Below are positions 4,451 to 63,165 of a stretch of 64,000 bases of DNA, in pieces. The first letter of the stretch is position 1; each line of letters starts with the position of its first letter. The notes below the pieces were generated by a model that saw only the letters and a list, made by a program, of their open reading frames with translations, did not search any database and was not told the origin of the DNA. A program made the translations under genes and the position numbers. The DNA is from Octopus sinensis. Lineage: Eukaryota. The DNA is taken from positions 172,670,001 through 172,734,000 of the forward strand of contig NC_042997.1 in assembly GCF_006345805.1 (NCBI RefSeq), given 5' to 3'.

Positions 4451-4589
4451 AGATGTCAAAAATAAGAGATATACTGGCTTTTTGCGTGAGATATAATCGG
4501 TAGGGGCCTTAAACAACAATATCAACAACGATGACAACAACAGCTCGTACTGACTTCTGTTTCATTTTCTGTTATTTGCAGTATTGTAG

Positions 4590-4915
4590 CTAAAACCCTA
4601 CCCCTAAAGCCTTAAAACCAGTACAGACACAAGAACGATGTCATAAAAATCAGTGACAAACGAAAAATACACCGCCGATAGTTGTTGACAAACAACGGCA
4701 GTAATTTTATTCAGCTGAATACACGTCATTGATTGGTTGAAATTACCGAAATACGAGAATTTTACGGTGAAATTACTTCGTAAGTATAAGTGTTTCTCAA
4801 AAATGCTAACAGTAAAACATGTTTTATATGACACATTCTACTAGTGTCCGAAGTTTTAAAGTGTTTAGTTACAAAAGATTATTTTTTAAATCTGTAGGTC
4901 AAAAGGTAAAGATCC
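4590..4915. mobile_element. Solo arm related to the 6413-7216 foldback element
   Basis: tgacacattctac...gaagttttaaagtgtttagtta...caaaagg(t/a)aaagatcc terminus shared with 7130-7216. Confidence 0.65.
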
Positions 4916-5584
4916 TAAATTTACTATAACGATACTAATTTAATGCATGGAATTCATTGAATGATTCAGCAAAGGGCAACTGTTTCGATGTTAGACATGC
5001 AGTATCAGCTGTATGCATTAACACATAACACTGTTAAAAGCACGGGACAAGAGTTCAACTCCATAAATACATAAAATATATCAAGACAGAGGCAGATGTT
5101 AAACTGCTTTCTTTAGGTGTCATAATAAAAGGAAAGTGTGCATGTGTGTATTAAGTTGCTTGCTTGTTCGTTTTGCTTTTAATGATTAGGCTAATTTAAA
5201 GAGGTATTTAATTCTATGAGAGTGTATAAAACAGTAATAATTATTTCTTTTATTGACCACAAGGTTATAAAATACTAATAATGGATATATATAATATTGT
5301 ATGTGTATGTATGTATGTATGTGTAAAAAGGAAGTCTTTGAAAATACAAATATATACATATGTATATATAATACTGTTTGTATTATTGTTTTCAGGCAGA
5401 CGTAGTTACAGTCCACTGAGATTCTTTCGTCCTTACAGACAAGTGTGCGTGTGTGATTGCTGGTCTCTGTGTTTATGTGTGTGTATGTATGCATCTGTAT
5501 ACATACACATACATATTTAAATTTGTAACCTTCTGTTTCATTCTTTTAAATTCATAAACGTATGTGTTGGGGTACATGTGTGTG

Positions 5585-5590
<6 letters not shown>

Positions 5591-5616
<26 letters not shown>

Positions 5617-5673
5617 TAATAATAATAATAATAATAATGAAATTATTGTATACAGTGCTCAGGTGCACCACAA
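5591..5673 (-). mobile_element. 36-nt CR1 LINE 3' end plus (ATT)n tail
   Basis: Reverse complement of 5638-5673 is identical to the CR1 3' end at ~26465-26501. Confidence 0.9.
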
Positions 5674-5680
5674 AAAAAAA
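5672..5680 (-). terminator. Pol III oligo-T terminator (T9) of tRNA-Gln
   Basis: T9 lies 5 nt downstream of the discriminator base. Confidence 0.75.
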
Positions 5681-5685
5681 TACTT

Positions 5686-5757
5686 AGGTTCTACCGAGAC
5701 TTGAACTCGGATCGCTGGATTCAGAGTCCAGAGTGCTAACCATTACACCATAGAACC
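5686..5757 (-). tRNA. trnQ-CTG: tRNA-Gln (anticodon CTG), intact cloverleaf, no encoded CCA
   Basis: GGTTCTATGGTGTAATGGTTAGCACTCTGGACTCTGAATCCAGCGATCCGAGTTCAAGTCTCGGTAGAACCT; 7-bp acceptor, 5-bp anticodon and T stems fully paired; A and B boxes present. Confidence 0.97.
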
Positions 5758-6412
5758 TCACTTATAAACATTATATATATATATATATACATGTATATGT
5801 GTGTATACACATACATACATATATATGTATGTGTATACATACTTATGTATATATGTATATGTATGTATATATACACACGTGTCTGTATACATACATATAT
5901 ATGTGTGAGTGTATATATATATAATTTCTGTAATATTTTGCTTCTATACTTTTTAAAAATTTAGATGAGTGTATACATTATATTTTATCTCTGCATATAT
6001 ACACACATAACCGCTCACACACGCGCAGCCCATTTATGGGATAGGAAATATTCTTTAAGATCGTCTCTAAACCTACATTGATTTCATTCTCGCTAAAATC
6101 AATTTTGTCAGTGTAACAGACGTATATTAGTTGGGGTCGATGAAACTTACGTTTTAAGCCAATATACGTAATATTGGATCGGAAGCTGTAGATTTATAGT
6201 CTGGCAGCTTGTAAACAGCCGTTATTACATTACAACCACGTTATTTCCATATAACGTATAGGCGGAGAGAAAGCTATCGATTTATTTATGGCTAGCGGAT
6301 AGTTGAATAGCTTAGTGGGTAGTTTCTATTAAAGACTGGCTTTTGGTTAATCCGTTGTCCAAGGTAAAACCATCACATGGCCATACGATGTCTTTGTAGG
6401 AGTTAACTTTGT

Positions 6413-7216
6413 GGATCTTTTCCTTTTGAACGGCATATGTCAACACAATTTCTAGTTAACTAAACACTTTAAAACTTCGTATACTGGTAGAATGTGTCAA
6501 AACAAAACATTTTTTTCTCTTGGCTTTCTTGAGAACATTGTAATTTGTTTGTTTAACGTAGTTTAATTTTTCGAATTTTAACCAATGAATTGCCTCTAAT
6601 TGAGCTAAAATCATTTGCTGCGTCTAAAAGTGAAACAACATCCTGTCACTAACCCCCACCCTCACCCTAACCCTAAATTTTAGCCTTTCGTTTTTTTTTC
6701 TTAATTGTTAAATTAATTTAAGGATAACAATTAAGAAAAAAAAAACCGAAAGGCTAAAACGAAAGCAATGGAAAATAATTTAAACAATTAACAAACAAAA
6801 TAATTCTATAATTTTATGCTCACGCTTTCCGTACGTATACATATACGAAAGGCTAAAATGAAAGCAAAAACTCAAAACAAAAACAAAATGAATAATTTTA
6901 GACACACGCGTAACAATTAAATTAATTTAACAATTAAGAAAAAAAAAAAAACGAAAGGCTAAAATTTAGGGTTAGGGTTAGTGACAGGATGTTGTCTCAG
7001 TTTTAGACGCAGCAAATGATTTTAGCTCACTAGAGGCGATTCATTGGTTAAAATTCGAAAAATTAAACTACGTTAAACAAACAAATTACAATTTTCTCAA
7101 GAAAGCCAAGAGAAAAAAATGTTTTATTTTGACACATTCTACCAGTATACGAAGTTTTAAAGTGTTTAGTTAACTAGAAATTGTGTTGACATGTGCCGTT
7201 CAAAAGGAAAAGATCC
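6413..7216. mobile_element. Foldback / large-TIR non-autonomous DNA element with internal TTAGGG repeats
   Basis: ~300-bp inverted arms (6413-~6720, ~6915-7216) starting ggatcttttccttttgaacggc; ccctaaccctaa / ttagggttagggttag at the inner ends. Confidence 0.85.
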
Positions 7217-7736: not shown

Positions 7737-7975
7737 ACAAGGCGGCGAGCTGGCAGAAACGTTAGCATGCCGGGCGAAATGTGTAGCCGTATTTCGTCTG
7801 CTGTTACATTCTGAGTTCAAATTCCGCCAAGGTCGACTTTGTCTTTCATCCTTTCGGGGTCGATAAATCAAGTACCAGTTACGCACTGGGGTCAATGTAA
7901 TCGACTTAATCCGTCTGTCTGTCCTTGTCTGTCCTCTTTATGTTTAGCCCCTTGTGGGTAATAAAGAAACAGATA
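7737..7975 (+). mobile_element. tRNA-derived SINE family C
   Basis: A box ggcgagctggcagaa, B box gagttcaaattcc; homologous to the 28680-29480 array. Confidence 0.85.
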
Positions 7976-8553
7976 TTAACAAAGCAGCATTTGTTCTGCA
8001 TTGTCACCTGAGTTTCTTCTTGGCGTTCACCGCCTTTCGAAAGTCTATTAATGGATGTTCACATAGAGCAACAACATTTAAGAATGGTTTACACTTCACA
8101 ACTAAATATGCATCCTAAACTAATATTTGATGTCTACTTATCAGATATTGAACACGTCTCTGGTAATATCCTCCAAAGTATTTCGTGTGCATGATTGAGG
8201 ATATCAATTGGACAGCATTTTCCTGTTCTCTTTCTTCTGCATCAAACACCCAATTCCTTTTATTTACTTATCCTGATGATATTCCTGGTGCATGTATTTA
8301 TGAATTTAAGGGATTTTAGTATCGTCACTTCCGGTGCAATTCACTTTCACTTTGTTTTTACAACACTAAACTGTACGCTAACCCAAATTGTAACCAGGTT
8401 AAAGAAAAGTACAAAAATGATAGAAATTACCAAAGGATGTCGATTATGCAAAGATTTAATAACTATAAACTCTAAAACACCAAAAATTCAATAATAAACA
8501 TATGCTCGTCTTTGGAAATTCCACTTTTGAATGGACGCATTAATCTATGACTA

Positions 8554-9638: not shown

Positions 9639-9731
9639 CTTTTAATAGAATCTGACCCAAGAAATAAGCTGTTCCTTAATACATCCCATCATGCTGATAC
9701 ACAGTTGTAATAAAATGTTCTCTGTCTACAC

Positions 9732-9915
9732 CAGTGCTCTGCAACTGGTATGTTGCGGAACACTGGTGTGCCACAAGCTGATGCTAGGCATGCTGCAGTG
9801 TAACTTGAATATAATTTTTTCCACGATACTTTTAGTTATATTTTTGATTCAGGTGTACTGCCGAATTTTGTTAAAAATAGTGTAGCGCAAGGGAAAAAAA
9901 GGTTGTGGAGCACTG
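9732..9915. mobile_element. hAT-type MITE
   Basis: TIR cagtgctctgcaac / gttgtggagcactg; TSD gtctacac/gtctacat. Confidence 0.8.
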
Positions 9916-10045
9916 GTCTACATGGCATGGATATAGCGACCTGTCACTGTTGAAGCTCGGTGAGGTAGTGTTTCGAAATACTTAGTAAAATAACTTTTGA
10001 GAACAATTATAAATTAATATTCAACGACATGGCACAGTTCTAAGT

Positions 10046-10383
10046 CAATTGGCTCTCAACGATATTTTGTCTATGGAGCCCTTTAATTATTATTTTATTC
10101 TGGTGAACCCCATAGCTATTCAATGTTTAAAAACTAATTTTATCTATATACTTCTTTCAAAATTCTTATTTTACTTTTCACACATTGTGCAGGTTAAACT
10201 ATGTAAAATGTCAGAAAAAGAAACTAAGTGGTTTCTTGCAATAAATACATCTAAAGCAAAGTTTTTTCACGAACTCTTAAAATATTACTGTAAGTCTCCA
10301 ATTTACTATTTTGTTTGTGGACCCCACCTCACATCTTATATGGATCACCAAGGGTCGCATTGACCCCCAGTTGAGAACAATTG
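10046..10383. mobile_element. Diverged hAT-type MITE
   Basis: caattggctctcaac / gttgagaacaattg termini; similar to 95-557. Confidence 0.6.
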
Positions 10384-11019
10384 CTTTAAGATAAAGTATC
10401 ATGTCTCAATATACAATGTCTCCTTTCCAATTCTCTATTACTGTTAGCATTGATGTTTAAGTAAAGGAAACAATAACCAATAAACTTTTATAGAAGAGTC
10501 GATAAAACTTTCAAGAAAAACTATGAACCACCCAAGAGAGACGCACAGAAACAGAGTAAGACAGGGAGAAAGAGGAGAAGGAGGGGGATTTAGCTGGCTT
10601 ACCAAATGTCCCGAAATTAGCCGGAACAGACCTGATTTAGAGTCTTTGCACTGATCTGTCTATAAGCTCATTCAGGAAAGATATATTAATGTCTAATGTA
10701 ATGGGGACCTTTTAAAACTTAATGGGATATTAAGAGATTATAGAATTAGTCGTACGTGTGATTCTGTATGTCCAATAAATACTAAAACAAGAGAGTCAGA
10801 AGAATGAAAGAGGAAGTTTGCGAAACTAATGCAGGCGTATAGAGAGGAACTAAAGCAGATACTGCGTTAGTTAGAAAGTGGGTTACTGTGATATACATAC
10901 TGAAAATTCTTCTTTCTTTTAAGATACATAATAATATGTATCTCTTTTGAGATTAATAATAATAATAGCAACAACAACAACAACAACAACAATAATAATA
11001 ATAATAATAATCCTTTCTA

Positions 11020-13589: not shown

Positions 13590-13995
13590 CAAGGGTGTGG
13601 CTGTGTGGTAAGTAGCTTGCTTACCAATCACATGGTTCCAGGTTCAGTCCCACTGTGTGGCACCTTGGGCAAGTGTCTTCTACTATAGCCTCGGGTCGAC
13701 CAAAGCCTTGTGAGTGGATTTGGTTGACGGAAACTGAAAGAAGCCCGTCATATATATGTATATATACGTGTATGTGTGTGTATATGTTTGTGTGTCTGTG
13801 TTTGTCCCCTCCAACATCGCCTGACAACCGATGCTGGGGTGTTTATGTCCCCGTAACTTAGTGGTTCAGCAAAAGGGACCAATAGAATAAGTACTGGGCT
13901 TACAAAGAATAAGTCCTGGGGTAGATTTGTTTGACTAAAGGCAGTGCTCCAGCATGGCTGCAATCAAATGACTGAAACAAGTAAAAGAGTAAAAG
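13590..13995 (+). mobile_element. SINE family A, near full length
   Basis: tRNA-like head gtggctgtgtggtaagtagcttgc...ggttcagtccc, central microsatellite, tail. Confidence 0.9.
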
Positions 13996-16080: not shown

Positions 16081-17072
16081 ACATATATATATATATATTT
16101 ATATATAAATGGTACCTTTCTAATTTGGTAACAGTTGAAATCTCAGGCAGATATTTTAACAAAATGCATTTTTTCTTACAAGGGAGAATACTCTTAGCAT
16201 CAGCTTGTATTATCTCCCTTCTCAACAGCCTTAACTGTAACATTTGTGAGAGTCAAGTTAGACTCCAGTCTTTTTCGGTGCGATATCTATTACACTTTCG
16301 CCACTGCTCTAAGTAAATTACAGGGGAGTATTTATTACTAACTTCTAATCCAAACTGGTTGAGTAGTTAAGGTGTCTTCCAGCTTGACTCACCAGTCTAC
16401 TGTTCACACCCTGCAGTATCTCTGAACCATTCACGTACGTCTAAACGCATCGGCTAACTCCGTTGGGGCAATAAACATTTAATACTATGATGCGACAAGG
16501 GAACCTCTATGCGGTCGCTCGACCTGCTAGAATTAACAGCCAAATCTAATTCAAATCACATCTTAAAAAGAGGGAAGGACATTAAATAATGTAATCTGAG
16601 ATACTCCTAAAAACGCGGGACGGACATAGCAGAAAGGCGTTTATTTGGTCGCAAGTCTGCTCAATCAAAGTTCATTTGAGTTTGACCGACATCATAATAC
16701 TCCACGAAGGTTACCGAGGATGGCCTAGAATCTTCTCCGATCGGTCTCATCTACTAAAACAAATAGAAATCAGATTCAAACAGCATTTACTTGGACAATG
16801 CACAAGCAATGTTTGCTGGGCCGCTAATTGCAAGGTTCTTGTCATCGTTTGCGGCTCGCTTTACCGAGATGGCAGATGATGCCCGTGAAGGGTGCTTGGC
16901 TTTTTCAACGCCTAAGTCTTGCCATCGCCAGTGGTAAATGCCGCGAGAGTGTTTGCTTGCTTCAGTAGGTGTGCGACCAACTGTGGCACTTGGTACTGCA
17001 TCGATGTTTTCCCTTTCTCCTTTTATTTTTGTTTGTTTTTGGTCTGTATAGATTATACAACAAAATATTAGC

Positions 17073-24529: not shown

Positions 24530-24895
24530 AAACCCTGTTGATCTCAGGGCCATTGACTGGCTCCTGTGCTGGTGGCGTGTAAGAAGCACCATTCAAGCAT
24601 GGTCGTTACCAGCGTCGCCTTACTGGCTCCTGTGCAGGTGGCACATAAAAAACACCATTTGAGCATGGCCGTCACCAGTACCACCTGACTGGCCCTCATA
24701 CCGGTGGAACATAAAAGCACCCACTACACTCTCAGAGTAGTTGGCATTAGGAAGGGCATCCAGCTGAAGAAACTCTGCCAGATCAGATTGGAGCCTTGTG
24801 CAGCCATCTGGCTCACCAGTCCTCAGTCAAACCATCCAACCAATGCCAGCATGGAAAGCATACATTAAACAATGATGATGATGATGATGATGATG
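24530..24895 (+). mobile_element. SINE family B
   Basis: Diverged internal ~60-bp units, aggaagggcatccagc core, (GAT)n tail. Confidence 0.85.
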
Positions 24896-25964: not shown

Positions 25965-26515
25965 TGCCCAGGATATTAATTGTCTGGAAACCGTTCAGTG
26001 ACGTGCAACCAAGAGAAACCCTCCATCAGGCATTTGCCATATTCTGAATGCCTTACTTCCCTGGGCATGGATACATTGAAACTCTGACGTCTGGCAGTTG
26101 ACTTGGCAGACATCCATAACATCATTAACCATCTTAAAAACAATAACTCTGAGCACCTTTTCAAACTCCACCTGTCTAACACCTGCGGACATATTTACAA
26201 AGTCAGAAAACAACACAGCTCCCATGACTTTCGGAAACATTTTTTCACGCTAAGAGTTGCTGAAGCATGGAACAAACTGCCGGCATCAGTTGTTAGTTGT
26301 CGGAGTACTACATCCTTCAAAACTTCCATGCTTCCTGAGATTCGCCAACACTACACCTGATTTTCTCTCCTCCATACACATGCAAGCATGTATCTGACTC
26401 ATACACTGTTCATTTCCCAGACATTTGTACATTACTGCGTATGCTTTATATGCACTTTTGACAAGTTGTGGTGCACCTGAGCACTGTATACAATAATTTC
26501 ATTATTATTATTATT
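25965..26515 (+). pseudogene. CR1 LINE 3' fragment with (ATT)n tail
   Basis: TCGHIYKVRKQHSSHDFRKHFFTLRVAEAWNKLPASVV...FKTS matches the CR1 ORF2 C-terminus. Confidence 0.9.
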
Positions 26516-28060: not shown

Positions 28061-28679
28061 ACGATTTTAATTTCGATTTCGATTACATTAACCCCAATAT
28101 TCAACTGGTACTTACTTTATTGACCATAAAAGGGATAAAAGGCAAAATTGACCTTGATTGAATTCTAACTCTAAACATAAAGACAGACAAAATGCTGCTA
28201 AGCATTTTGTCAAGCACAATAATGATTCTGCCAGCTTGTTTTTCTAGAAGCCTGTAATTATTAAGATTAATTAAAATGACTTAATGACCGTTTTATAGCT
28301 GTTTCATAAGCATTAGAATTTTTATAGATATTTGGGGATTCCAGTATTGTTTATACATGGCGTATAAACAATACTTTAGGAGCCCAAGAAGAAGCATGTG
28401 ATTACTAAGATTAATTAAAGTGACTTAATAGCTATTTTATTATATGTTATATAAACATAAAAAGGGTCAACATGCAGTTTAGAGGTTTTAAATAAAACGA
28501 AAGTAAATTGACTGGAAGTGATGCCAATATCATCTCATAATTCCATAAAAAAGAACGCGAGAACATAAAGAAAATTATTGAAATCCCTTAATTTTATTTA
28601 CAGAATTCCTTCATTATGCAGCTTCTACAAGCACCAACTAATACAGTGTCTTTAATAATGTTTTAAGTATTTCAAGGCA

Positions 28680-29480
28680 GTGAGCATGCCAGGTGAAATG
28701 CATAGTGGTATTTTGTCTACCTTTGCGTTCTGAGTTCAAATTCCGCTGAGGTCAGCTTTGCCTTTCATCCTTTTGGGGTCGATAAATTAAGCACCAGTTA
28801 TGCACTGGGGTCAATGTAATCGACTTAATACCTTTGCCTGTCCTTGTTTGTTCCCTCTGTGTGTAGCCCCTTGTGGGCAGTAAAGAAATAAGAAATGTTA
28901 GCACACCAGGCGAAATACTTAGTGGTATTTTGTCTGCTGCTACATTCTGAGTTCAAATTCCGCTGAGGTCAGCTTTGCCTTTCATCCTTTTGAGGTTGAT
29001 AAATTAAGCACCAGATATGGACTGGGGTCGATGTAATCGACTTAATCCCTTTGTCTGTCCTTGTTTGTCCCCTCTATGCTTAGCCCCTTGTGGGCAATAA
29101 GGAAATAAGAAATGTTAGCACACCAGGCGAAATACTTAGTGGTATTTTGTCTGCTGCTACATTCTGAGTTCAAATTCCGCTGAGGTCAACTTTGCCTTTC
29201 ATCCTTTCAGGGTCGATAAATTAAGTACCAGTTATGCACTGGGGTCGATGTAATCGACTTAATCCCTTTGCCTGTCCTTGTTTGTCCCCTCTATGTTTAG
29301 CCCCTCGTGGGCAGTAAAGAAATAGGTATTTCGTCTACCTTTGCGTTCTGAGTTCAGATTCTGCCGAGGTCAGCTTTGCCTTTCATCCTTTCGGGGTCGA
29401 TAAATTAAGTACCAGTTGTGTACTGGAGGCGATCTAATCAATCTGCCCCTTTCCCAAAATTTTCTGGCCTTGTGCCAAGA
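28680..29480 (+). repeat. Tandem array of four SINE C units (~218-bp period)
   Basis: aagaaatgttagcacacc recurs at ~28890 and ~29108; four gagttca(a/g)att B boxes. Confidence 0.9.
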
Positions 29481-30134
29481 GGAGAAAAGAATATTCTAAG
29501 TATTTCAGAAAAAGCTGCCTAGGTACACTATTCCAATGTAATACACTCAGCAATACACACCACAGTGAAAGCAATACATTGGCTTGCATGTCAATGCATG
29601 GAAGTCAATACAGTTACATATAAACAATGCTATAACCCTGCATGACAAATGAGCTGCACAGAGGGAACCAACAGGAAGCAGTGTTGCTGTTCCGGTTGAT
29701 TCTCATTCTATACATTGGTTATGCTGCACAGATTATTTACAAGAAATTATAAGATTTCATTGTTGTAACCTCTGGTCATTTTACTGTCATAATCATCATC
29801 ATCATTTAATGTCTGTTTAGCATGCTGGCATGGGTTGGATGGTTTGACAGAAGTTGACCAGCTGGAGAGCTGCCTGGGTTCTATTTGTCTTTCAGCATGG
29901 TTATGATGCCCTTCCTAATGTAAATCACTTTACAGTAGTGTGGTAGGTGCTTTTATGTGGCACTGACATGAGCACTTTTACATGGCACTGACACAGACAC
30001 TTTTACATCGCACTAGCACAGGTACTTTCATGTGGTACCAACACAAGTGCTTGATGGCACTAGCATGGGTGCCTTCACATGGCACCATTATGGATGACCA
30101 TTAAACTGCATGTTAACCTATAAAAGATAATGCT

Positions 30135-30375
30135 CTTTTACTTTTTTACTTGTTTCAGTCATTTGACTGTGGGCATGCTAGAGCACCGCATTTAGTCGAG
30201 CACATCAACCCCAGGACTTATTCTTTGTAAGCCTAGTACTTATTCTATTGGTCTCTTTTGCTGAACCGCTAAGTTATGGGGATGTAAACACACCAGCATT
30301 GGTTGTCAAGCGATGTTGAGGGGACAAACACAGACACACAAACATATACACATACACACATATACATACATATAC
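30135..30375 (-). mobile_element. SINE family A 3' half
   Basis: Reverse complement of the family A tail. Confidence 0.85.
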
Positions 30376-30379
30376 AATT

Positions 30380-31239
30380 GACAAACTTGTTTATATGACT
30401 GGTGTGTCCTGGAACTCTTACCAATGAATTTTGAGTGAGGAATTGCAAATGAAAAGAGTTGCAGCAAAGTTTGTACTTCGCTTGTTCACAGGAGATCAAA
30501 AGCAGTCACATCTCAGTGTATGCCGGGAACAGGAAGAACAGTCAGAAGTTGATCTGGACATTTTTATGAAGGTCATCACTGGTGATGAAAATTGCTGCCA
30601 TGGTTACAACCCAGAAATGAAGCAACAATCAAGTCAATGGAAACATTTAATGTCACCACGACCCCAAAAAGAACGTCAAGTGAAGTCTAATGCCAAGACA
30701 ATACTGGTTTGTTTCATCAATGTGAAAGGAATTGTCCGCATAGAATTTCTTCCTCTTGGTCAAACTGTTAAACAGACATTTTACTTGGCAGTTCTGAAAT
30801 GTTTGTGAGACGTGGTGAGACGAAAATGCTCCAATCTGTAGCAAAGTGGAGAGTGGCGGTTTCATCATGACAATGCACCTGTGCACACCGCCTTGAGTGT
30901 GAGACAGTTTTTGGCAAAAATGGTATGAATCCACTTACCCACCCTCCCTATTCATCCAGTTTTGCTCCCTGCAACTTTTTTTGTTCCTCACAATGAAAAA
31001 AGAGAACTTAAAGAAAAGCGTTTTAACGATGTGGAAGAGGTGAAGGAAAAAAAGACAGACGTGTTAGAAGATGTCACTTCACAAGAGTCCCAGAACCGTT
31101 TTGAATGGTAGGAAATGTGTCTGGACTGATGCATTTCTTCAAATAGAGAATACTTTGGAAGTAATAAAAGTGTAAACATGTAAAGCTATGTGAATAAAAT
31201 GATATTGCAAAATTCCGGTTTCTTTTCAGTACCCCCTTG
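30380..31239 (+). mobile_element. Decayed mariner, 5'-truncated
   Basis: KRVAAKFVLRL...VITGDE...KQQSSQWK...HHDNAP; right TIR ttcttttcagtacccccttg-TA. Confidence 0.9.
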
Positions 31240-32484: not shown

Positions 32485-32895
32485 TACAGGAGCGGCTGTG
32501 CGATAAGTAGCTTGCTTACCTACCACATAGTTCCGGGTTCAGTCCCACTGCATGGCACCTTGGGCAAGTGTCTTCTACTATAGCCTCGGGCCAACCAAAG
32601 CCTTGTGAGTGGATTCGGTAGTCGGAAGCTGAAAGAAATCCGTCGTATATATGTATATGTATAGAAATGTGTGTGTGTATATGTTTGTGTGTCTGTGTTT
32701 GTCCCCCCAACATCGCTTGACAACTGATGCTGGTGTGTTTACGTCCCCGTAACTTTGCAGTTCAGCAAAAGAGACTGATAGAATAAGTACTAGGCTTACA
32801 AAGAATAAGTTCTGGGGTCGATTTGCTTGACTAAAGGCGGTGCTCCAGCATGGCCGCAGTCAAATGACTGAAACAAGTAAAAGAGTAAAGAGTGG
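32485..32895 (+). mobile_element. SINE family A, full length
   Basis: Complete head, body and tail. Confidence 0.9.
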
Positions 32896-35557: not shown

Positions 35558-36089
35558 TAATTGTATGACAGCTACATCAAGTTTAGTTTTTTGTTACACT
35601 CTAACCTTTCATCATCTGGCACAAGCTCATCTCATCCAATGCCTCCTCTCCTCGCTAAGGATCTTTGTCTTACAAGCTACTTGGTGACGCTACCCATGCT
35701 GATGACATGTAAAAAGCATCCAGTCAACACTGCAAACTGGTTGGCATTTGGAAGGGCATCCAGCTGTAAAAATCATGCCCAAACTGACCTTACATGTGCT
35801 AGTGGCACATTAAAGACTCTCAGTTTATTCTGTAGGGTGGTTGGATTTAGGAAGGGTATCCAGCTGTAAAAGCCATGCCAAAGCTGACAGCAAAGCCTGG
35901 TGCGGTCTTCTGCTTAGCCAGCTCCTGTCAAACCATTCAACCCATGCCAGAATGGAAGGTAGATATTAAACAATGATGATGATGATGACGATGATGAAGT
36001 AATTTAAACGTTTTTAGCATTGAGATTACTCTGTCAAATGTAATGCGTATTTATCCACATTCTTTTGAATTTATCATCATCATCGTTTA

Positions 36090-36385
36090 ACGTCCATTTT
36101 TCATGCTAGCATAGGTTGGATGGTTAGACTGGGGTCTGGGAAGCCAGGAGACTGCACCAGACTCCAGTCTGATCTGGCAGTGTTTCTACAGCTGGATGCC
36201 CTTCCTAACGCCAACCATTCCGTGAGTGTAGTGGGTGCGTTTTACATGCCAGGTGAGGCTGGCAATGGCCACGATCGGTTGGTGATTTTTGCGTGCCACC
36301 GGCACGGTGGCCAATCGAGGCAGTGCTGGCAACAGCCACATTCGGATGGTTCTTTTACGTGCCACCGGCACTGGTATCACAACTA
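36090..36385 (-). mobile_element. SINE family B
   Basis: Family core and (GAT)n tail. Confidence 0.85.
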
Positions 36386-38440: not shown

Positions 38441-38844
38441 TATGCTGTCAACGATAATTTCCGTACTTCAATATAAAACATGCCTGAGTATGGCCACAGC
38501 TCGTGAGCTGAAACTAGATAAAATAAATAAAAAAATTTTTTTAGAATAAATAAATCACTCATCTAATAGGATTAATCAGATACTTTGCAAATATCTATGT
38601 TTGTAAAGTATATTTATAAAGAAACAAATGTCAGTGTGAGGAAATCTGATGTTTCTGATGAAGTCCGAGAAAGGTTTCTTGAGTTAAGTTTAGTACATCA
38701 GCTGAAGAAGACTACGAAACACTTGATATAGAAATATTCTGGATGAAATACCTTCCTATTCATCTCTTGATATCAAATTGGTCTTTTAAAATTCTGTTGT
38801 TTGTTTCTTTGTAAAGCCGCATTTTCAGTGCTTGCTGCTGTCAA

Positions 38845-39305
38845 TACTAAATTCTGAATGCCTTACTTCTCTGGGCATAGATACATTGAAACTCCGACAT
38901 CTGGCAGCTGACTTGGCAGACACCCATAAAATTATTAACCATCTTACAAACAATAACTCTGAGCACCTTTTCAAACTCCACCTGTCTAAAGTCAGAAAAC
39001 AGCACAGCTCCCATGACTTTCGGAAACATTTTTACACTCTAAGAGTTACTGAAGTATGGAACAAACCGCCGGCATCAGTTGTTAGTTGTCGGAGCACTGC
39101 ATCCTTCAAAACTTCCATGCTTCCTGAGATTCGCCAACACTACACCTGATTTTCTCCCCTCCATACACATGCAAGCATGTATCTGACTCATACACTGTTC
39201 ACTTCCCAGACATTTGTACATTACTGCATATGCTTTATACGCACTTTTGACAAGTTGTGGTGCACATGAGTACTGTATACAATAATTTCATTATTATTAT
39301 TATAA
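38845..39305 (+). pseudogene. CR1 LINE 3' fragment
   Basis: Closely matches 26040-26515; (ATT)n tail. Confidence 0.9.
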
Positions 39306-42119: not shown

Positions 42120-42495
42120 ATGTCTGTGCCGGTGGCACGTTAAAAGTACCATTCAAACGTGATTGTTACCTGTGTCGCCTTACTGGCATGTGAAAAAACA
42201 TTCGAGTGGGGTTGTTGCCAGTGCTGCTGGACTGGCTCCTGTGCAGATGGCACATAAAAAACACCACTTGAGCGTGGCCGTTGCCAGTACCGCCTGACTG
42301 GCACTCGTGTCGGTGGCAAGTAAAAGCACTCACTACACTCTCAGAGTGGTTGGCGTTAGGAAGGGCATCCAGCTGTAGAAACTCTGCCAGATCAGATTGG
42401 AGTCTGGTGAAGTCATCTGGTTCACCAGTCCTCAGTCAAATCGTCCAACCCATGCTAGCATGGAAAGCAGACGTTAAACGATGATGATGATGATA
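42120..42495 (+). mobile_element. SINE family B
   Basis: Three diverged internal units, core and (GAT)n tail. Confidence 0.85.
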
Positions 42496-46362: not shown

Positions 46363-46958
46363 CAGGCATACCTTGGCTTAAGTTGTTTCAGTTTAAGTTG
46401 TTCTCGATTATATGTTGTTTTCAAAAATATATGGAAAAATAAAAATCAAGGTATGTCATTTTACTCGACTTTATGTCATTGTCACTTGTGATTCCCACAA
46501 TGGTTTCAAATTCAGATTTGATTATGCCTGTTTATCGGCTGCTTTTTCATTCTTATTTATTTGTGACTATTTTTTGCCCCGGTGGCTCCTAAGAAAATTC
46601 ATAGTGAAAGTGCTAAGCATCATGCTATAATGTGGGAAGATAAACTGCCTACAATAAAACATCACAAGAAAGGCGAAAAACTGGTAGCAATTGCACAATC
46701 TTTTGGGATAAGTTGGACAACTGTGTTGGTGATTGTATATAATAAGGACAAGGTTTTAACACACATCAAACACACCAAACCATGTTTTATTGAAAATGCA
46801 TTCATAAATAAGCACAGACCTGGGAATGGTTATTGCTGGTTTAGCCTAGAGACAAGTAAATTCGGCCTAGCATAGCTTAGAGACAAGTTAATTCAACTTA
46901 ACCAGTTAACAACGTAGGGTCTCCTGGAACCAATTAACAATGTAGGGTGAGGTATACT
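46363..46958 (+). mobile_element. Tigger/pogo deletion derivative
   Basis: TIR caggcatacc... / ...gtgaggtatact; CENP-B-like HTH (KGEKLVAIAQSFGISWTTV). Confidence 0.8.
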
Positions 46959-47355
46959 CTTTTACTCTTTTACATGTTTCAGTCATTTGACTGCGGCCAT
47001 GCTGGAGCACCGCCTTTAGTCGAGCAACTCGATCCCGGGACTTATTCTTTGTAAGCCCAGTACTTATTCTATCGGTCTCTTTTGCTGAACTGCTAAGTGA
47101 CGGGGACGTAAACACACCAGCATCGGTTATCAAGCAATGCTAGTTGGACAAACACAGACACACAAACATACATGCACACATATATACATATATACGACAG
47201 GCTTCTTTCAGTTTCTGTCTACCAAATCCACTCACAAGGCTTTGGTCAGCCCAAGGCTATAGTAGAACTTGCCCAAGGTGCCAAGCAGTGGGACTGAACC
47301 CGGAACCATGTGGTTGGTAAGCAAGCTACTTACCACACAGCCGCTCCTGCGCCTA
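46958..47355 (-). mobile_element. SINE family A, full length
   Basis: Family homology. Confidence 0.9.
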
Positions 47356-49492: not shown

Positions 49493-50697
49493 CATACCAC
49501 ATATATATATTACATATATATATATGTATACTCTCCATTGCTCTTATATTGATGTACAGGCACAATTTTTCATCATCAGTAATGATTCGGTAAAGAAATT
49601 GTTGCTTGTGTCCATGAGTTGAGCGGTGCTGAGCAAGCAAACCAGCAGAGATTGTGGCTCATTGATTTTGTTGTCACTTAAAGAATGTGGAACCCATGCT
49701 CCATACTTCTGAACCTTTCCCAATGAGTGAAGATGCTTCTCTATAGCAGTGTGGGAGCATTTCATTAACTCTGCCAGTTCCCTTGCCATTTGATGAGAAT
49801 TTTCGTGCAAAGGTTGGTTTAATTTCTCTTCATCAAACTCAACTGGACAGCCTGAACAAGGTGCATCTTTGAGGTAAAAATTTCCATTTTTGAACTTGGC
49901 ATACCAATCTCGAGTGGTTCTTTCAGCTATGGCACCCTCTCTATACACAGCATAAATATTAGAACCATGATTAAAAGCAAGAAGAAGGAAGTGTTGAAAA
50001 TACTTGTTTTTCTTAACTTGACATTCCATTTTAATGATCTGAAAATAAACAAAAATTAATTAAAATTAGCTAGAAAAGAAAAACAAAATAGTATCCAAAA
50101 TGATTCCAAAATAGAATTCTTGGAAAAAATAGATTCCAAAATTTAAAAACGCAGTTAATTCCAAAACTGGAAAAAACGTCGGGAACTTAGTTGCCAACCC
50201 AATAATTTCAGAAATTGTCTGACAGCCATGACTGGGTTCTTCTGCTTGTATGGCAGGATGCAGAGTCCTCTTGCCAGACATAGGGTTTTCCAGCAGCCAC
50301 CCTCTTGATCCAAGTCAGCACTACCTCCTCCAGGCACTTGATGTAGGCCTCCATGTTGAGGGTGAGGCTGTGTAGGAAGATGAATGGAGACATAACGTTG
50401 CCATCAGTAGTGATCACTCCAAACACCATGATGTTGACCGGATGTTTGATTTTTGTCACTCTTAGTAAATGTTTTGGCAGCACAGCAAGCCAACGGTAGT
50501 TCTGTATGTTCACTATCAGTTTGTAATGGAGCTTCTGGCATGAATACCAAGCAGCGCAGCATATCATTTCCAAATTTCTGGCAGAGTGAACTGTGTCATG
50601 GTGCGGTTTTTCTCATAATGGTGCCCAACTGACCCTACTATACCGCGTAGTCAACAAAGTCAAAAACAAACAATGCGCATGCATGAAATTAAAAATA

Positions 50698-54568: not shown

Positions 54569-54739
54569 TTAAAGTAACCCTGAGGGAAATCACCTTCAAA
54601 ACAGAATATCTGTAAATGTGTGTACCCACAACAAACAACATCAACAAAATAACAAGTGCAGTATCAGCCTGAGCACTAATAATAATGGTTTCTAACCTGT
54701 GCGCAGAGCCAGAAATTTCAGTGGGGAGAATGTTAGTAA

Positions 54740-54955
54740 TGTGTTTGTGTGTTTGTGTTTGTCCCCCCAACATTGCTTAACAATCGATGCTGGTGTGTTT
54801 ACATCCCCGTAACTTAGCGGTTCGGCAAAAGAGACCGATAGAATAAGTACTAGGCTTACAAAGAATAAGTCCTGGGGTCGATTTGCTCAACTAAAGGCGG
54901 TGCTCCTGCATGGCCGCAGTCAAATGACTGAAACAAGTAAAAGTAAAAGATTATA
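54740..54955 (+). mobile_element. SINE family A 3' half (copy at ~59725-59935)
   Basis: Family homology. Confidence 0.85.
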
Positions 54956-55079: not shown

Positions 55080-55500
55080 TGGTAACTGGTGAGATCATCT
55101 TGCTATCTTGTCTTTGGTCAGCCTCTTGATCTTGTCCATTGTCTTGGTGTCAATTCCGTCATCCTGATTGTCCATCTGTTGTCTTTCAGTCGCATGATGT
55201 GGCTGACCCATCTATATTTGTTCTCCTTGATGATTCTTATGATGTCATTGACCCTCATCTGCTGTTGTACCCAGGTGTTGGTTTTCTTGTCCTGCAATGT
55301 GATATTGAGCATGATTTGTTCCATTTTTCATTGGGTTACAATAAGGGCATTCGTGATGGTAAAGCTGAGAGCCTGCGTTTCACAGCCATAAATCATCACT
55401 GGCAGGATGTACTTGCTGAAGGTCTTTCTTTTAATTTTCATGGAAGCCTTGGGACTTCTCATAAGGTTTTCCACTCGTCTGATACTTAATTCAATTGACC
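55080..55500 (-). pseudogene. RTE-clade LINE RT C-terminal fragment
   Basis: KRKTFSKYILPVMIYGCET...MEQIMLNITLQDKKTN...RWVSHIMR..DNRWT. Confidence 0.85.
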
Positions 55501-55861
55501 CTCCAAGAGGAGAAATCAAATTTGCCTTTCATTCTTTTGGAGTTGATAAAGTAGGGAACCAGTCAAGCAGTGGGGTCAATGGTCTCAACTAACCTTCTCC
55601 CCTTGAAGTTGCAGGCTTTGTACCAGTTTTTAACCATAGGATGAAAGTTAACTTGAATCTACCTTGCTGGAATTGCACAGATTTTGAGCAGCTACATTGA
55701 ATTTTCAACAACAAATGATTCTTTGCTTGCACTTTGATCAGAACCTTTTACAGAATTATATCTACTGCATATCCATAGTCCTTGTTATTCCTTAGCAATT
55801 TACCACTCTATTGCTCACATACATGGCTCTATCCATTCATTACCTTATGTATCAGTACAGG

Positions 55862-56810: not shown

Positions 56811-57452
56811 ACCAAATCAAATCAAAACAAATCAAAATAGATGAACATCAATGGAATTTGTATCTTTGTGGTACCAGTGCCGGTGGCACGTGGCACATAA
56901 GAAAACCATCCGAACGTGGCCGTAGCCAGTACCGCATCGATTGGCCTCCGTGCTGTGGGCACGTAACAAGCACCATCCGATCGTGGCCGTTTGCCAGCCT
57001 CATCTGGCACCTGTGTCGGTGGCACATAAAAACACCCTCCGAGCGTGGCCGTCTGCCAGCCTCGTCTGGCACCTGTGTCGGTGGCACATAAAAAACACCA
57101 TCCGAGCGTGGCCGTCTGCCAGCCTCGTCTGGCACCTGTGTCGGTGGCACATAAAAAACACCATCCGAGCGTGGCCGTCTGCCAGCCTCGTCTGGCACCT
57201 GTGTCGGTGGCACATAAAAAACACCATCCGAGCGTGGCCGTTTGTCAGCCTCGTCTGGCACCTGTGTCGGTGGCACATAAAATCACCCACTACACTCTCG
57301 GAGTGGTTGGCGTTAGGAAGGGCATCCAGCTGTAGAAACACTGCCAGATCTGACTGGACTGGTGCAGCTTTCGGGCTCCCCAGACCCCAGTTGAACCGTC
57401 CAACCCATGCTAGCATGGAAAGCGGACGTTAAATGATGATGATGATGATGAT
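56811..57452 (+). mobile_element. SINE family B with an internal 63-bp VNTR (~5 units), present only in duplicate copy 2
   Basis: ctcgtctggc-type unit starts at 56999, 57061, 57124, 57187 and 57250. Confidence 0.92.
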
Positions 57453-60059
57453 ATATATATATAGGACACAGAAAGTGTGTCAATAGCCAGCTGGAGAAGA
57501 TGTTCTCAAGCTACAGTAGCATTCACCCTTAGTGGTTAATCACATTTAAGTGGCAAATATACTTCACACACACACCCACACACATATATATATTCTAGTG
57601 TAAACAACATGCTATCTCAAAGATAACATATTTAGCAGTGATAATAGGATTTGTATACTCTCATTATCTAGTGTACATTTCTTTTTGTGTGTGTGTGTGT
57701 CTGTATTTATTTTCTTTTACTTGTTTTACTCATAGGATTGAACCTTGGCCATGCTGGAACACTACATTGAAGGGTTAAATTAATCAAATCAGCTCTGATA
57801 CTTATCTAAAGTCATTACTACTGTTATTCTGTCAGTTACTTCTGTCAAACTGCTGAGTATTTGGGAAGTAAACAAAAAATACTGTTTGTCAAGTGTTGAC
57901 AGAACCACGTGCGCACACACACACACACACACATCTATTGGATCTCCCTTGGTTTAAATCAGTGGCTCTCAACCATTTTCTACACATTGATTCCTTTTTA
58001 CTTGGGTGGACCCTCAGAGCCATTTTTGGCTAAAATGATCCTATTATATTTGTATGAGCAAAAGGCCCCCCACCGTCCAATGGACGGTGCTGAGTTGTCA
58101 ACATTTAAACCAAATTTTCTCAAAACAACTTGCCTCACCGTCCCATAGGCCTCCCCTTTGAGAAACACTGATTTAACCTAAATTTGAGACACCAGCAAAA
58201 GAAGAAATAAAGATAGACTTTTTTTCTATTCCAAGAAAAACGATTTTATAAATGCACGTTCCCACGGCTATATCGATCGCGTTCTCACCTGGAATCGATT
58301 TTGTTTAATTTTTTCAAGACTTATACACACCCGATACCGTCGGTATCTACATATCAAATTTGAGCGCAATCGGATAGGGGATGCCTGAGATCCTAGAAGC
58401 CACACACACCGACAGACAGAAAGGATTTTATATAATAGATGATTAAGTATTATAATAATTGTATTAAAAATTTGTTAAAATATTTTGTGTATTGTAGAAG
58501 TATAACAGTTTATTTCACATGAATTTTAACAATGATGTGTTTTGCGGGTCCCCCAAAGGTCATATAACCTTGTTGGAGAACCACTGGTTTAAACATGAGG
58601 ATTCACTCATTCTATGCATACCCATAACACTATTCTTGGGCAAAATCAGCATAATACTCAATGGACTGGCAAAGGTTGCCTTGAACTGTACTTTAAAGGG
58701 CATCATGAAAACCCCTATGGCTTTGTCAAAGCTCACATAAGTTACTGTTCTTTCTTTAAGTACCTGTATGGTGACCTCAGGTAAAAAAATACCATATAGG
58801 CAGCAATGTTTGTGGTTATGAACTTGGGTTTCGCCTACCTGTGTATTATGGAACCGTATTGTAAATAGTTGTGTAACACTTGCCTTCTTGCTACATCCTG
58901 AATCTGAATGATAGGTATGTGTTTATATATACTCTCTGCCTGTCAAGGGAGTATATATCTTGTCATATCTGACATACATCGTCCAGAAGCCTCCACCTTC
59001 TTGACATTATGTGAAAATCACTAGTTTTTTTTAAAATTTTCTAAAATTTTTATTTTATATTTATTTATTTATTCTTTTATTTATTTATTTATTTATTTAT
59101 TTTGAAAACCAGAAATTTTACTTTCCTCTTTGCTCTTTCCTGTGATGACCATACTGAACCACTCATGTATATATAATAAATATGCAAAACTAAGAATAGA
59201 TATTTACAAAAATATATGTACACAAATTCCAAGGATGAACCTTCTTTTCTACCCTATTACATAGGATAGACATTTAAATATTCCAAAACCCTTTGCTTAT
59301 GAAAAACAAACCAAAAATTCTATTTGCCTTAACCCTTTAGTGTTCACATTATTCTGCCCAAATTAATGCTTTTTCATCCCATCGTTTTGAACTAATTATG
59401 CATTATCTTGTAGCTATGAGATTTTGATGAGGTAGCTGTTAATTTTTAAAGCAATATTGTAGGGTTGGTGTGAGAGATCGGATCTGGCCATTTTGAACAT
59501 AAAACAAGCAGAATACTTTTGGCTGGATATGGCCGGTTTAAATGCTAAAGGGTTAAAGTAACCCTGAGGGAAATCACCTTCAAAACAGAATATCTGTAAA
59601 TGTGTGTACCCCAACAAACAACATCAACAAAATAACAAGTGCAGTATCAGCCTGAGCACTAATAATAATGGTTTCTAACCTGTGCGCAGAGCCAGAAATT
59701 TCAGTGGGGAGAATGTTAGTAATGTGTTTGTGTGTTTGTGTTTGTCCCCCCAACATTGCTTAACAATCGATGCTGGTGTGTTTACATCCCCGTAACTTAG
59801 CGGTTCGGCAAAAGAGACCGATAGAATAAGTACTAGGCTTACAAAGAATAAGTCCTGGGGTCGATTTGCTCAACTAAAGGCGGTGCTCCTGCATGGCCGC
59901 AGTCAAATGACTGAAACAAGTAAAAGTAAAAGATTATATAGACACCAGTACTTGACTGGTCCACTTCCACTTATAGAGCTTCATTAATCCTGAAAAAGGA
60001 ACCCCTCCCTGAACTCCTTTTACTGCCATCTATTTCTAGCCAGTTATGAGCATGTAGGC

Positions 60060-60480
60060 CTCTGGTAACTGGTGAGATCATCTTGCTATCTTGTCTTTGG
60101 TCAGCCTCTTGATCTTGTCCATTGTCTTGGTGTCAATTCCGTCATCCTGATTGTCCATCTGTTGTCTTTCAGTCGCATGATGTGGCTGACCCATCTATAT
60201 TTGTTCTCCTTGATGATTCTTATGATGTCATTGACCCTCATCTGCTGTTGTACCCAGGTGTTGGTTTTCTTGTCCTGCAATGTGATATTGAGCATGATTT
60301 GTTCCATTTTTCATTGGGTTACAATAAGGGCATTCGTGATGGTAAAGCTGAGAGCCTGCGTTTCACAGCCATAAATCATCACTGGCAGGATGTACTTGCT
60401 GAAGGTCTTTCTTTTAATTTTCATGGAAGCCTTGGGACTTCTCATAAGTTTTTCCACTCGTCTGATACTTAATTCAATTG
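60060..60480 (-). pseudogene. RTE LINE fragment (duplicate of 55080-55500)
   Basis: Near-identical sequence. Confidence 0.85.
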
Positions 60481-60842
60481 ACCCTCCAAGAGGAGAAATC
60501 AAATTTGCCTTTCATTCTTTTGGAGTTGATAAAGTAGGGAACCAGTCAAGCAGTGGGGTCAATGGTCTCAACTAACCTTCTCCCCTTGAAGTTGCAGGCT
60601 TTGTACCAGTTTTTAACCATAGGATGAAAGTTAACTTGAATCTACCTTGCTGGAATTGCACAGATTTTGAGCAGCTACATTGAATTTTCAACAACAAATG
60701 ATTCTTTGCTTGCACTTTGATCAGAACCTTTTACAGAATTATATCTACTGCATATCCATAGTCCTTGTTATTCCTTAGCAATTTACCACTCTATTGCTCA
60801 CATACATGGCTCTATCCATTCATTACCTTATGTATCAGTACA

Positions 60843-62819: not shown

Positions 62820-63129
62820 TACCTGTGCCGGTGACATATAAAAAGCACTGTCTAAACATGGCAGATGCCAGTGCCGCCAGCCTGGCGTCCATGTCGGTGA
62901 CACACAAAAGCACCAACCGATCATGGCCATTTGCCAGCCTCCCCTGGTTGGCCCCTGTGCCTGTGACACATAAAAATCACCCACTACACTCACAAGTGGT
63001 TGGCATTAGGAAGGGCATCCAGCTGTAGAAACACTGCCAGATCAGACTGGAGCCTGGTGCAGCCTCCTGGCTTCCCAGACCCTGGTTGAACTGTCCAACC
63101 CATGCTAGCATGGAAAACTGACATTAAAC

Positions 63130-63165
<36 letters not shown>
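62820..63165 (+). mobile_element. SINE family B
   Basis: Core and long (GAT)n tail. Confidence 0.85.

Follow-up and report, generated by a model that had tools for sequence, protein, structure and literature searches.

A tRNA-Gln gene joined at its oligo-T terminator to the 3′ end of a CR1-like LINE in Octopus sinensis: short insertion or chimeric retrocopy?

How does a complete tRNA gene come to be followed, directly at the last base of its terminator, by the 3′ end of a retrotransposon? The question is raised by a cassette in the genome of Octopus sinensis, located in a stretch of 64,000 nucleotides (NCBI RefSeq assembly GCF_006345805.1, contig NC_042997.1, positions 172,670,001 to 172,734,000 of the forward strand; hereafter, the 64-kb window). 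Read on the minus strand, as it is throughout, the cassette comprises a tRNA-Gln(CUG), a run of nine T's of the type that terminates transcription by RNA polymerase III (Pol III) and the 3′ end of a CR1-like long interspersed nuclear element (LINE) with a microsatellite tail. A first-pass annotation, made from the sequence alone, had set a retrotransposed pre-tRNA/LINE chimera against a CR1 stub inserted at a tRNA terminator, and on anatomy this framing holds. Both readings are known kinds of event. The one that we favour, with about an even chance of being correct, is that of a resident tRNA-Gln(CUG) gene with its own terminator, behind which a very short CR1-like insertion landed later.

The arrangement of the tRNA-Gln and the LINE 3′ end at 5591-5771 was confirmed base for base (Table 1). 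Reading of the sequence, ARAGORN, Rfam and BLAST agreed with the order previously described, i.e., a leader, a tRNA-Gln(CUG) without CCA, AAGTA, T9, a CR1 3′ end and (ATT)n. The identity claimed to a LINE 3′ end near 26465, with a TT overlap, was also borne out: BLAST aligned 5624-5673 with 26515-26466 at 50/50 identical positions, over a segment that spans the TT overlap, a 33-mer and (ATT)5. The tail, described as (ATT)n, is indeed an ATT repeat, but one made of two ATT arrays split by an odd AT. The LINE portion is in sense with the tRNA, on the same strand, and begins right at the last T of the terminator; the last two T's of the T9 (5673-5672) could just as well be the TT that the LINE has before GTGG, so that the two parts overlap by 2 nt at the junction. 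The LINE part, or stub, amounts to the last 33-35 bases of the LINE plus its ATT-repeat tail. The window contains three instances of its 33-mer, where shuffled sequence would give 0.00, and the two other occurrences, both on the plus strand, show no mismatch (26468-26500) and two mismatches (39257-39289) to the stub.

Table 1. Features of the tRNA-Gln/LINE cassette and of the longer LINE copies in the window.
Feature	Position	Strand	Basis or remark
(TA)9	5789-5772	-	Directly upstream of the 14-nt 'leader'; sequence read, Tandem Repeats Finder (TRF) rows 5772-5904
ATGTTTATAAGTGA, 14 nt between (TA)n and the tRNA	5771-5758	-	Pre-tRNA 5′ leader or plain gene-proximal flank
tRNA-Gln(CUG), 72 nt, no encoded CCA	5757-5686	-	ARAGORN, Rfam RF00005
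3′ trailer AAGTA	5685-5681	-	Sequence read
T9, Pol III terminator-type run	5680-5672	-	Sequence read
33-nt terminal module of the CR1-like LINE, GTGGTGCACCTGAGCACTGTATACAATAATTTC	5671-5639	-	Identical 33-mer in longer copies
Microsatellite tail, (ATT)7 AT (ATT)8 A	5638-5591	-	TRF: 16.7 copies, 95% matches
Downstream flank, TATATACACACACATG, TATATA(CA)4TG..., purine/pyrimidine-alternating	5590-5558	-	Would hold the 3′ copy of the putative TATATA duplication
Longer 5′-truncated LINE copy	26006-26514	+	ORF2 C-terminus (...HDFRKHFFTLRVAEAWNKLPASVVSCRSTTSFK...), 3′ untranslated region (UTR), identical 33-mer, (ATT)4-5
Second 5′-truncated LINE copy	38851-39303	+	90.7% identical to the first copy; 33-mer with two mismatches; (ATT)4

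ARAGORN found a single tRNA in the window, the tRNA-Gln with anticodon CTG (5685-5758, minus strand), and the Rfam tRNA model RF00005 matched 5757-5686 with 67.7 bits (gathering score, 29; E value, 1.3e-12), over model positions 1-71 in full and with zero non-standard pairs flagged. The regions corresponding to the A and B boxes, identified by eye, read TGGTGTAATGG and AGTTCAAGTCT. The features of a functional tRNA gene, i.e., a canonical cloverleaf, a 3′ end encoded without CCA, a trailer of few bases and a run of four or more T's behind it, are all present, and judged by them the tRNA-Gln(CUG) gene is intact and apparently functional. It differs from human tRNA-Gln-CTG only in the acceptor stem, by a single compensated pair, and in the T loop, by a single base.

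Both longer copies of the LINE continue from the end of the open reading frame (ORF; ...HDFRKHFFTLRVAEAWNKLPASVVSCRSTTSFKTSMLPEIRQHYT and the stop codon) through some 110 nt of 3′ UTR into the 33-mer, behind which come four to five ATT units. All the LINE copies examined are 5′-truncated, with lengths of about 200 to 520 bp, and none reaches the reverse transcriptase (RT). The C-terminal domain of ORF2 (26088-26357 and 38790-39146) carries the motif RKxFFTxRVxxxWNxLPxxVVxxxSxxxFK, which we take to be that of chicken CR1; none of the Pfam families matched this domain, and UniRef labels its Octopus vulgaris homologue 'Tick transposon'. A 3′ end formed by a hairpin and a microsatellite is typical of the CR1 group (PMC5729268). 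Together, the C-terminal motif and the hairpin/microsatellite 3′ end suggest that the LINE is CR1-like. Recent activity of CR1 LINEs is reported for O. vulgaris, where 13 families and 787 near-consensus insertions were counted (PMC13282606). When the 90 C-terminal residues of the LINE served as a protein query, only five relatives were returned, of which two are 'hypothetical predicted proteins' of O. vulgaris on the chromosome record OX597841.1 and three lie on short ENA metagenome contigs (L003 and L005, ERZ27277065; L004, ERZ23499306). These contigs encode the octopus LINE C-terminus at 71-79% identity, and the two metagenomes would therefore appear to contain cephalopod DNA, from host or prey.

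The terminal block of the LINE recurs among these relatives. At one O. vulgaris locus (L001), an identical 33-mer (10475-10507) ends another truncated copy, and a version with three mismatches is found on the opposite strand (16568-16600); the more distant relative L005 retains the same block (474-506). Every copy ends with ...TTTC or CTTC followed by ATT repeats, in full at four of the five 3′ ends and as ATTAT only in the plus-strand copy of L001. That locus also holds two partial copies of the LINE 3′ region arranged head to tail (9716-10011 and 10011-10527), the first of which is without the last 120 nt or so; the two are annotated separately (P0003 and P0001) and lie within a cluster of C2H2 zinc-finger genes. 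Long neighbouring ORFs at L001, considered as possible LINE ORFs, were rejected as they are C2H2 zinc-finger genes. The tail of the cassette is three times longer than the (ATT)4-5 tails of the other copies. Since the stub has no mismatch in 33 nt and the longest and purest tail among the copies, its insertion appears to be young.

Where the stub begins may have a structural meaning. A fold of the alignment of five 3′ ends (26468-26500, 39257-39289, L001 10475-10507, L001 16568-16600 and L005 474-506) predicts a two-step, 10-bp hairpin, GUUGU-GGUGC ... GCACU-...-ACAAU. In this alignment 50/50 sequence-by-pair cells are paired, against 24-63% in slid registers, and the version at L001 16568-16600 shows one compensatory change, of U-A to G-C, while two pairs are changed to wobble. 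The covariation was equalled in 92/500 shuffles, and the single-sequence fold was no better than shuffled sequence (z = -0.7); conservation of a terminal hairpin in all five copies is thus suggestive, and not significant with five sequences. The stub starts right where the predicted hairpin has its foot, and two U's of the outer UUGU/ACAA stem are supplied by the T-run. Because of this starting point, the stub would seem to represent the minimal terminal module of the LINE, i.e., the predicted hairpin, an AAUUUC spacer and the tail, and the last 35 nt or so of the LINE are a candidate recognition site for its RT.

In the reading that we favour, the LINE endonuclease would nick the bottom strand by the A9 run (5′-...TATA/AAAAAAAAA-3′, the slash marking the nick) or in the adjacent ATT/TA array, where the LINE RNA would anneal by its (AUU)n tail and reverse transcription would start. 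Synthesis of the cDNA would cover only the terminal hairpin, about 35 nt; the two A's that end the cDNA (...CCACAA-3′) would then pair with T's of the genomic run laid bare at the break, and microhomology-mediated joining would seal the insertion. The tRNA gene would be left unharmed, still terminating at T9, and the LINE stub would be inert. What we infer from the arrangement is which event came first, where the nick was made and that the tRNA gene was already resident.

Several observations are consistent with such a course. A copy of 35 nt would be the short extreme of a normal distribution of 5′ truncation, every copy seen being truncated. A 2-nt microhomology is the usual joining signature of truncated LINEs; by chance, it is expected at about 16% of junctions (Roth formula, quoted in PMC4476161). 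The T9 is unremarkable as genomic DNA, since the window, with 36.6% GC, has 24 A/T runs of nine or more. An A-run beside a TA is, to judge from L1, a typical target of LINE endonucleases of the apurinic/apyrimidinic endonuclease (APE) type. The odd AT in the tail fits an (ATT)7 tail of the LINE primed on a pre-existing (ATT)8 array, and may mark the true 3′ junction; the window has 21 independent arrays of at least five ATT/AAT units, both halves of the cassette tail included. Moreover, taking a few hundred thousand (about 5 × 10⁵) LINE insertions, about 10³ tRNA genes, a 10-bp window, one orientation and a 2.7-Gb genome, about one same-orientation abutment of a LINE and a terminator is expected per genome by chance, and more if A-runs are preferred, an estimate good to an order of magnitude only.

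As in ordinary CR1/LINE insertions with a truncated 5′ end, which arise by target-primed reverse transcription and are joined on the 5′ side through microhomology, the 3′ end and the microsatellite tail are intact, the 5′ part is truncated, the 5′ overlap is of 2 nt and, as in the other copies of the family, a clear target-site duplication (TSD) is lacking; unlike in these insertions, the stub is extremely short (hairpin plus tail) and its junction falls exactly at a tRNA terminator. The TRE5 and TRE3 LINEs of Dictyostelium, and the yeast elements Ty1 and Ty3, target tRNA genes via contacts with TFIIIB/TFIIIC. At the octopus locus a retroelement likewise lies beside an undamaged tRNA gene; however, there is no sign of systematic targeting by the octopus LINE, as the other LINE copies, in the window and in the loci fetched, were not found beside tRNA genes in a tRNA scan.

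Four points weigh against a separate, later insertion of the stub. First, the junction falls on the very last T of the terminator, and the LINE part has the same orientation as the tRNA; by analogy with U6/L1 chimeras, an exact junction with a T-run would be the very product of a template switch onto an oligo-U end. Second, the preference of this LINE's endonuclease for A-runs is an assumption, the boundaries of the five 3′ junctions being hidden by the ATT tail. Third, the whole cassette, and not the stub alone, is bracketed by TA/CA DNA. Fourth, removal of the cassette in full leaves a seamless (TA)n(CA)n tract. The weight of the third point can be estimated. The TA/TG microsatellite reported to flank the cassette is present on both sides, but the 750 bp from 5281 to 6027 are a patchwork of six purine/pyrimidine-alternating TA/CA tracts with islands of 38-157 bp between them, one of these islands being the cassette; the tract upstream of it is that at 5762-5926. 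A random point of the window falls inside a tract in 5.5% of cases; of random 188-bp segments, 2.2% have a tract at either end. Hence, the two-sided tracts favour insertion of the whole cassette over a resident segment only about 2.5 times, a likelihood ratio of small weight, and with six tracts in the patchwork we rejected the two-sided microsatellite as proof that the whole cassette was inserted.

These same points bear on the strongest alternative, a single event, which we regard as possible rather than probable. In it, the LINE RT, working at a nick in the (TA)n(CA)n tract, would jump from the terminal hairpin onto the oligo-U end of a pre-tRNA-Gln, aided by the AA/UU overlap, copy the latter to its 5′ end and insert the whole; the product would have the order leader, tRNA, trailer, T-run, LINE module and tail, and the event is one proposed to create the short interspersed nuclear elements (SINEs) with a tRNA head and a LINE tail. 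The two readings are parallel, and differ only in what the nascent cDNA end paired with, a genomic T-run or the U's of a pre-tRNA. The architecture is that of U6/L1 chimeras, in which a complete Pol III RNA with an oligo-U end is joined in sense to a 5′-truncated LINE 3′ end (PMC4476161). Here too, the 3′ part is a 5′-truncated LINE 3′ end with its tail, the 33-mer and (ATT)n being identical to those of longer copies. The first part has the complete Pol III RNA sequence and the oligo-T, yet a resident gene looks identical, and this feature does not discriminate between the two. A 5′ leader of some 8-14 nt with A as its first base, together with the trailer, fits a primary Pol III transcript, and the foot of the predicted hairpin is precisely where the LINE part stops. 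As a precedent, a template switch of the CR1 RT onto a tRNA has been proposed to explain PittSINE, a SINE of passerine birds, as a tRNA/CR1 chimera (PMC5729268).

Genuine U6 chimeras are, however, recognised by one duplication that encloses the complete chimera, with none between its parts (Doucet et al., 2015; PMC4476161), and around the cassette no unambiguous duplication is seen. The only candidate for a duplication around it is the shared TATATA, which lies inside TA/CA microsatellite on both sides; what had been put forward as a possible TATATA TSD is just six bases of TA repeat among six such tracts. No paralogous empty site was found in the window, the flanks (4500-7000) having no other copy by BLAST except for a foldback-type repeat. 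Two other LINE copies with a definable 5′ end have at most four to five A/T-rich bases duplicated (AATAC or AATA). Since other copies lack clear duplications, the lack of one around the stub alone is no argument against its separate insertion, and we dropped TSDs as a discriminator, the LINE family giving no clear ones. The leader fares no better as a defined 14-nt unit: its start is arbitrary, being the point where the pure (TA)n ends, and the leader (..TGTTTATAAGTGA) is itself partly purine/pyrimidine-alternating like the flank, its ATAAGT being comparable to ATAAGTATG at about 5845-5837.

Other comparisons also tell against a single event. The seven to nine U's that a T9 would give in RNA are more than is usual at the end of a Pol III transcript on its release. 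Buzdin et al., in 2002, reportedly described U6/L1 and other small nuclear RNA (snRNA)/L1 chimeric retrogenes formed via template switching; the cassette resembles U6/L1 chimeras in the features given above, but its partner is CR1-like with a microsatellite tail and not an L1 with poly(A), its RNA would be an unprocessed pre-tRNA and there is no unambiguous duplication around the whole. The 21 tRNA/L1 chimeric loci of primates consist mostly of tRNA halves, antisense to L1 (twin priming), with duplications of 9-19 bp (PMC13174262; bioRxiv 10.1101/2025.02.02.635956). Both they and the cassette bring tRNA and LINE sequence together, whereas the tRNA of the cassette is of full length, in sense and with leader and trailer; sense chimeras with full-length tRNAs appear to be rare even for L1. 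Finally, neither a parent gene nor a second copy was seen, and the T4-GTGGNGCNC junction was unique in the 64 kb and five loci searched. The suggestion that the cassette is a pre-tRNA/LINE chimera caught as an intermediate in the birth of a SINE thus finds weak support in the TSD, the leader and the T9.

That the cassette is already a copy, or the master, of a dispersed minimal SINE, whose unit would be tRNA-Gln, T-run and GTGGTGCACC, seems to us very improbable. A tRNA head with A and B boxes and a LINE hairpin/microsatellite module are the minimum for a SINE of the stringent type (PMC5729268), and 11.6% of the O. vulgaris genome consists of SINEs, most of the families being unclassified (PMC13282606). 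In passerines, TguSINE1 and PittSINE are working SINEs mobilised by CR1, with a tRNA head and a CR1 tail of hairpin and terminal microsatellite (Suh et al., 2017; PMC5729268). The cassette has in common with them the tRNA head with its internal promoter and a LINE-derived 3′ module, for which support of the hairpin is weak. The passerine SINEs, in contrast, have many copies and no internal terminator, whereas one copy of the cassette was seen, and its T9 parts head from tail such that no single Pol III transcript would cover both; transcription would end before the LINE module, and the unit would not be copied whole. The window and about 22 kb of non-overlapping octopus loci held a single such tRNA and a single such junction. 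Metagenome contigs gave no match to the tRNA 3′ end plus trailer plus T5 and none to the LINE 33-mer, though this collection evidently holds no octopus DNA, or none of this LINE family, as the 33-mer is unmatched there. Contigs of prokaryotic genomes gave no match to the tRNA-Gln.

We give even less credence to a direct fusion, in which the tRNA 3′ end would have been joined to LINE ...AAGTTGTGG in the manner of a real SINE, with A+T8 as a later insertion. CCT-AAGT-A-T9-GTGG in the cassette and GAC-AAGT-T-GTGG in the LINE copies have AAGT in common, and if a 9-nt gap is allowed the homology to the LINE reaches 4 nt further, up to the discriminator base of the tRNA (5681-5685 versus 26461-26467). 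However, the AAGT match was noticed afterwards and, allowing for alternative offsets, is a coincidence of about 1-2%; slippage does not turn TT into AT8, and normal tRNA genes have just such a short trailer and T-run. The match of AAGT is probably due to chance. The cassette as cargo of a DNA transposon was rejected, as the inverted arms around it (4794-4915 and 6413-6535) are only 79% alike by BLAST and belong to a separate foldback repeat.

That foldback consists of two 186-nt arms (6413-6598 and 7031-7216), 98% complementary and 432 nt apart. A third, older arm at 4794-4915, 79-80% identical, has the orientation of the right arm, and the cassette sits between inverted arms 1.5 kb apart; the arms look like copies of a foldback repeat, or miniature inverted-repeat transposable element (MITE), rather than one transposon carrying the tRNA. 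Other repeats are also present in the window. A SINE-like repeat, about 200-240 nt long, is abundant, with copies that are 83-91% identical to one another, at 1661-1760, 13776-13993, 32672-32889, 54732-54949 and 59715-59932, and inverted at 30134-30372 and 46958-47194; it is without the 3′ module of the LINE studied here, and would therefore depend on a different partner or tail. A 217-bp tandem array at 28674-29439 has three to four units, 80-90% identical, and a lone related unit (7755-7977) lies 21 kb away, about 2 kb from the tRNA. A 63-bp tandem repeat at 56903-57342 has six to seven units, up to 99% identical, and the repeat family that holds it is also present at 2740-2872, 24583-24882, 36073-36242 (inverted), 42192-42491 and 62842-63141. 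A tandem duplication of about 5 kb (54626-54925 and 59609-59908; spacing, 4983 bp) is 100% identical over the 300-nt stretches compared, and each unit has the same ORFs, with near-identical products (55121-55528 and 60104-60511, minus strand). The duplication stems either from the assembly or from a segmental event of very recent date. Remnants of mariner/Tc1-like transposase ORFs were recognised by eye at 49547-50612 (minus strand) and 30428-30934, from stretches resembling helix-turn-helix (HTH) and DDE motifs (e.g., ...YAVYREGAIAERTTRDWYAKFKNGNF...). A 102-residue ORF just downstream of the cassette and ten other ORFs of the window had no exact match in the protein collection, and a protein search with 3,375 residues of concatenated unique ORFs from positions 1-15.2 kb gave no match.

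What the cassette means depends on which reading is correct. As a short LINE insertion, it would be an ordinary piece of a repeat-rich octopus genome and at most a presence/absence marker, with a hint that oligo-T terminators are good targets for LINE endonucleases. If it is instead the retrocopy of a single event, of which we are doubtful, it would be the first tRNA-head/LINE-tail fusion to be caught, in a mollusc and with a stringent, CR1-type LINE, frozen by the terminator that it kept. It would then be direct evidence that CR1-type RTs switch onto primary Pol III transcripts, a step that is assumed, and rarely observed, in the origin of tRNA-derived SINEs. Pol III stops at T-runs such as the T9, before the LINE module would be transcribed. 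Because of this stop a role as a SINE is excluded for the unit as it stands, and whatever its origin, the cassette cannot propagate as a SINE in its present form. The locus thereby shows why the product of such a switch need not become a SINE: once the terminator is kept, promoter and LINE recognition module are no longer coupled.

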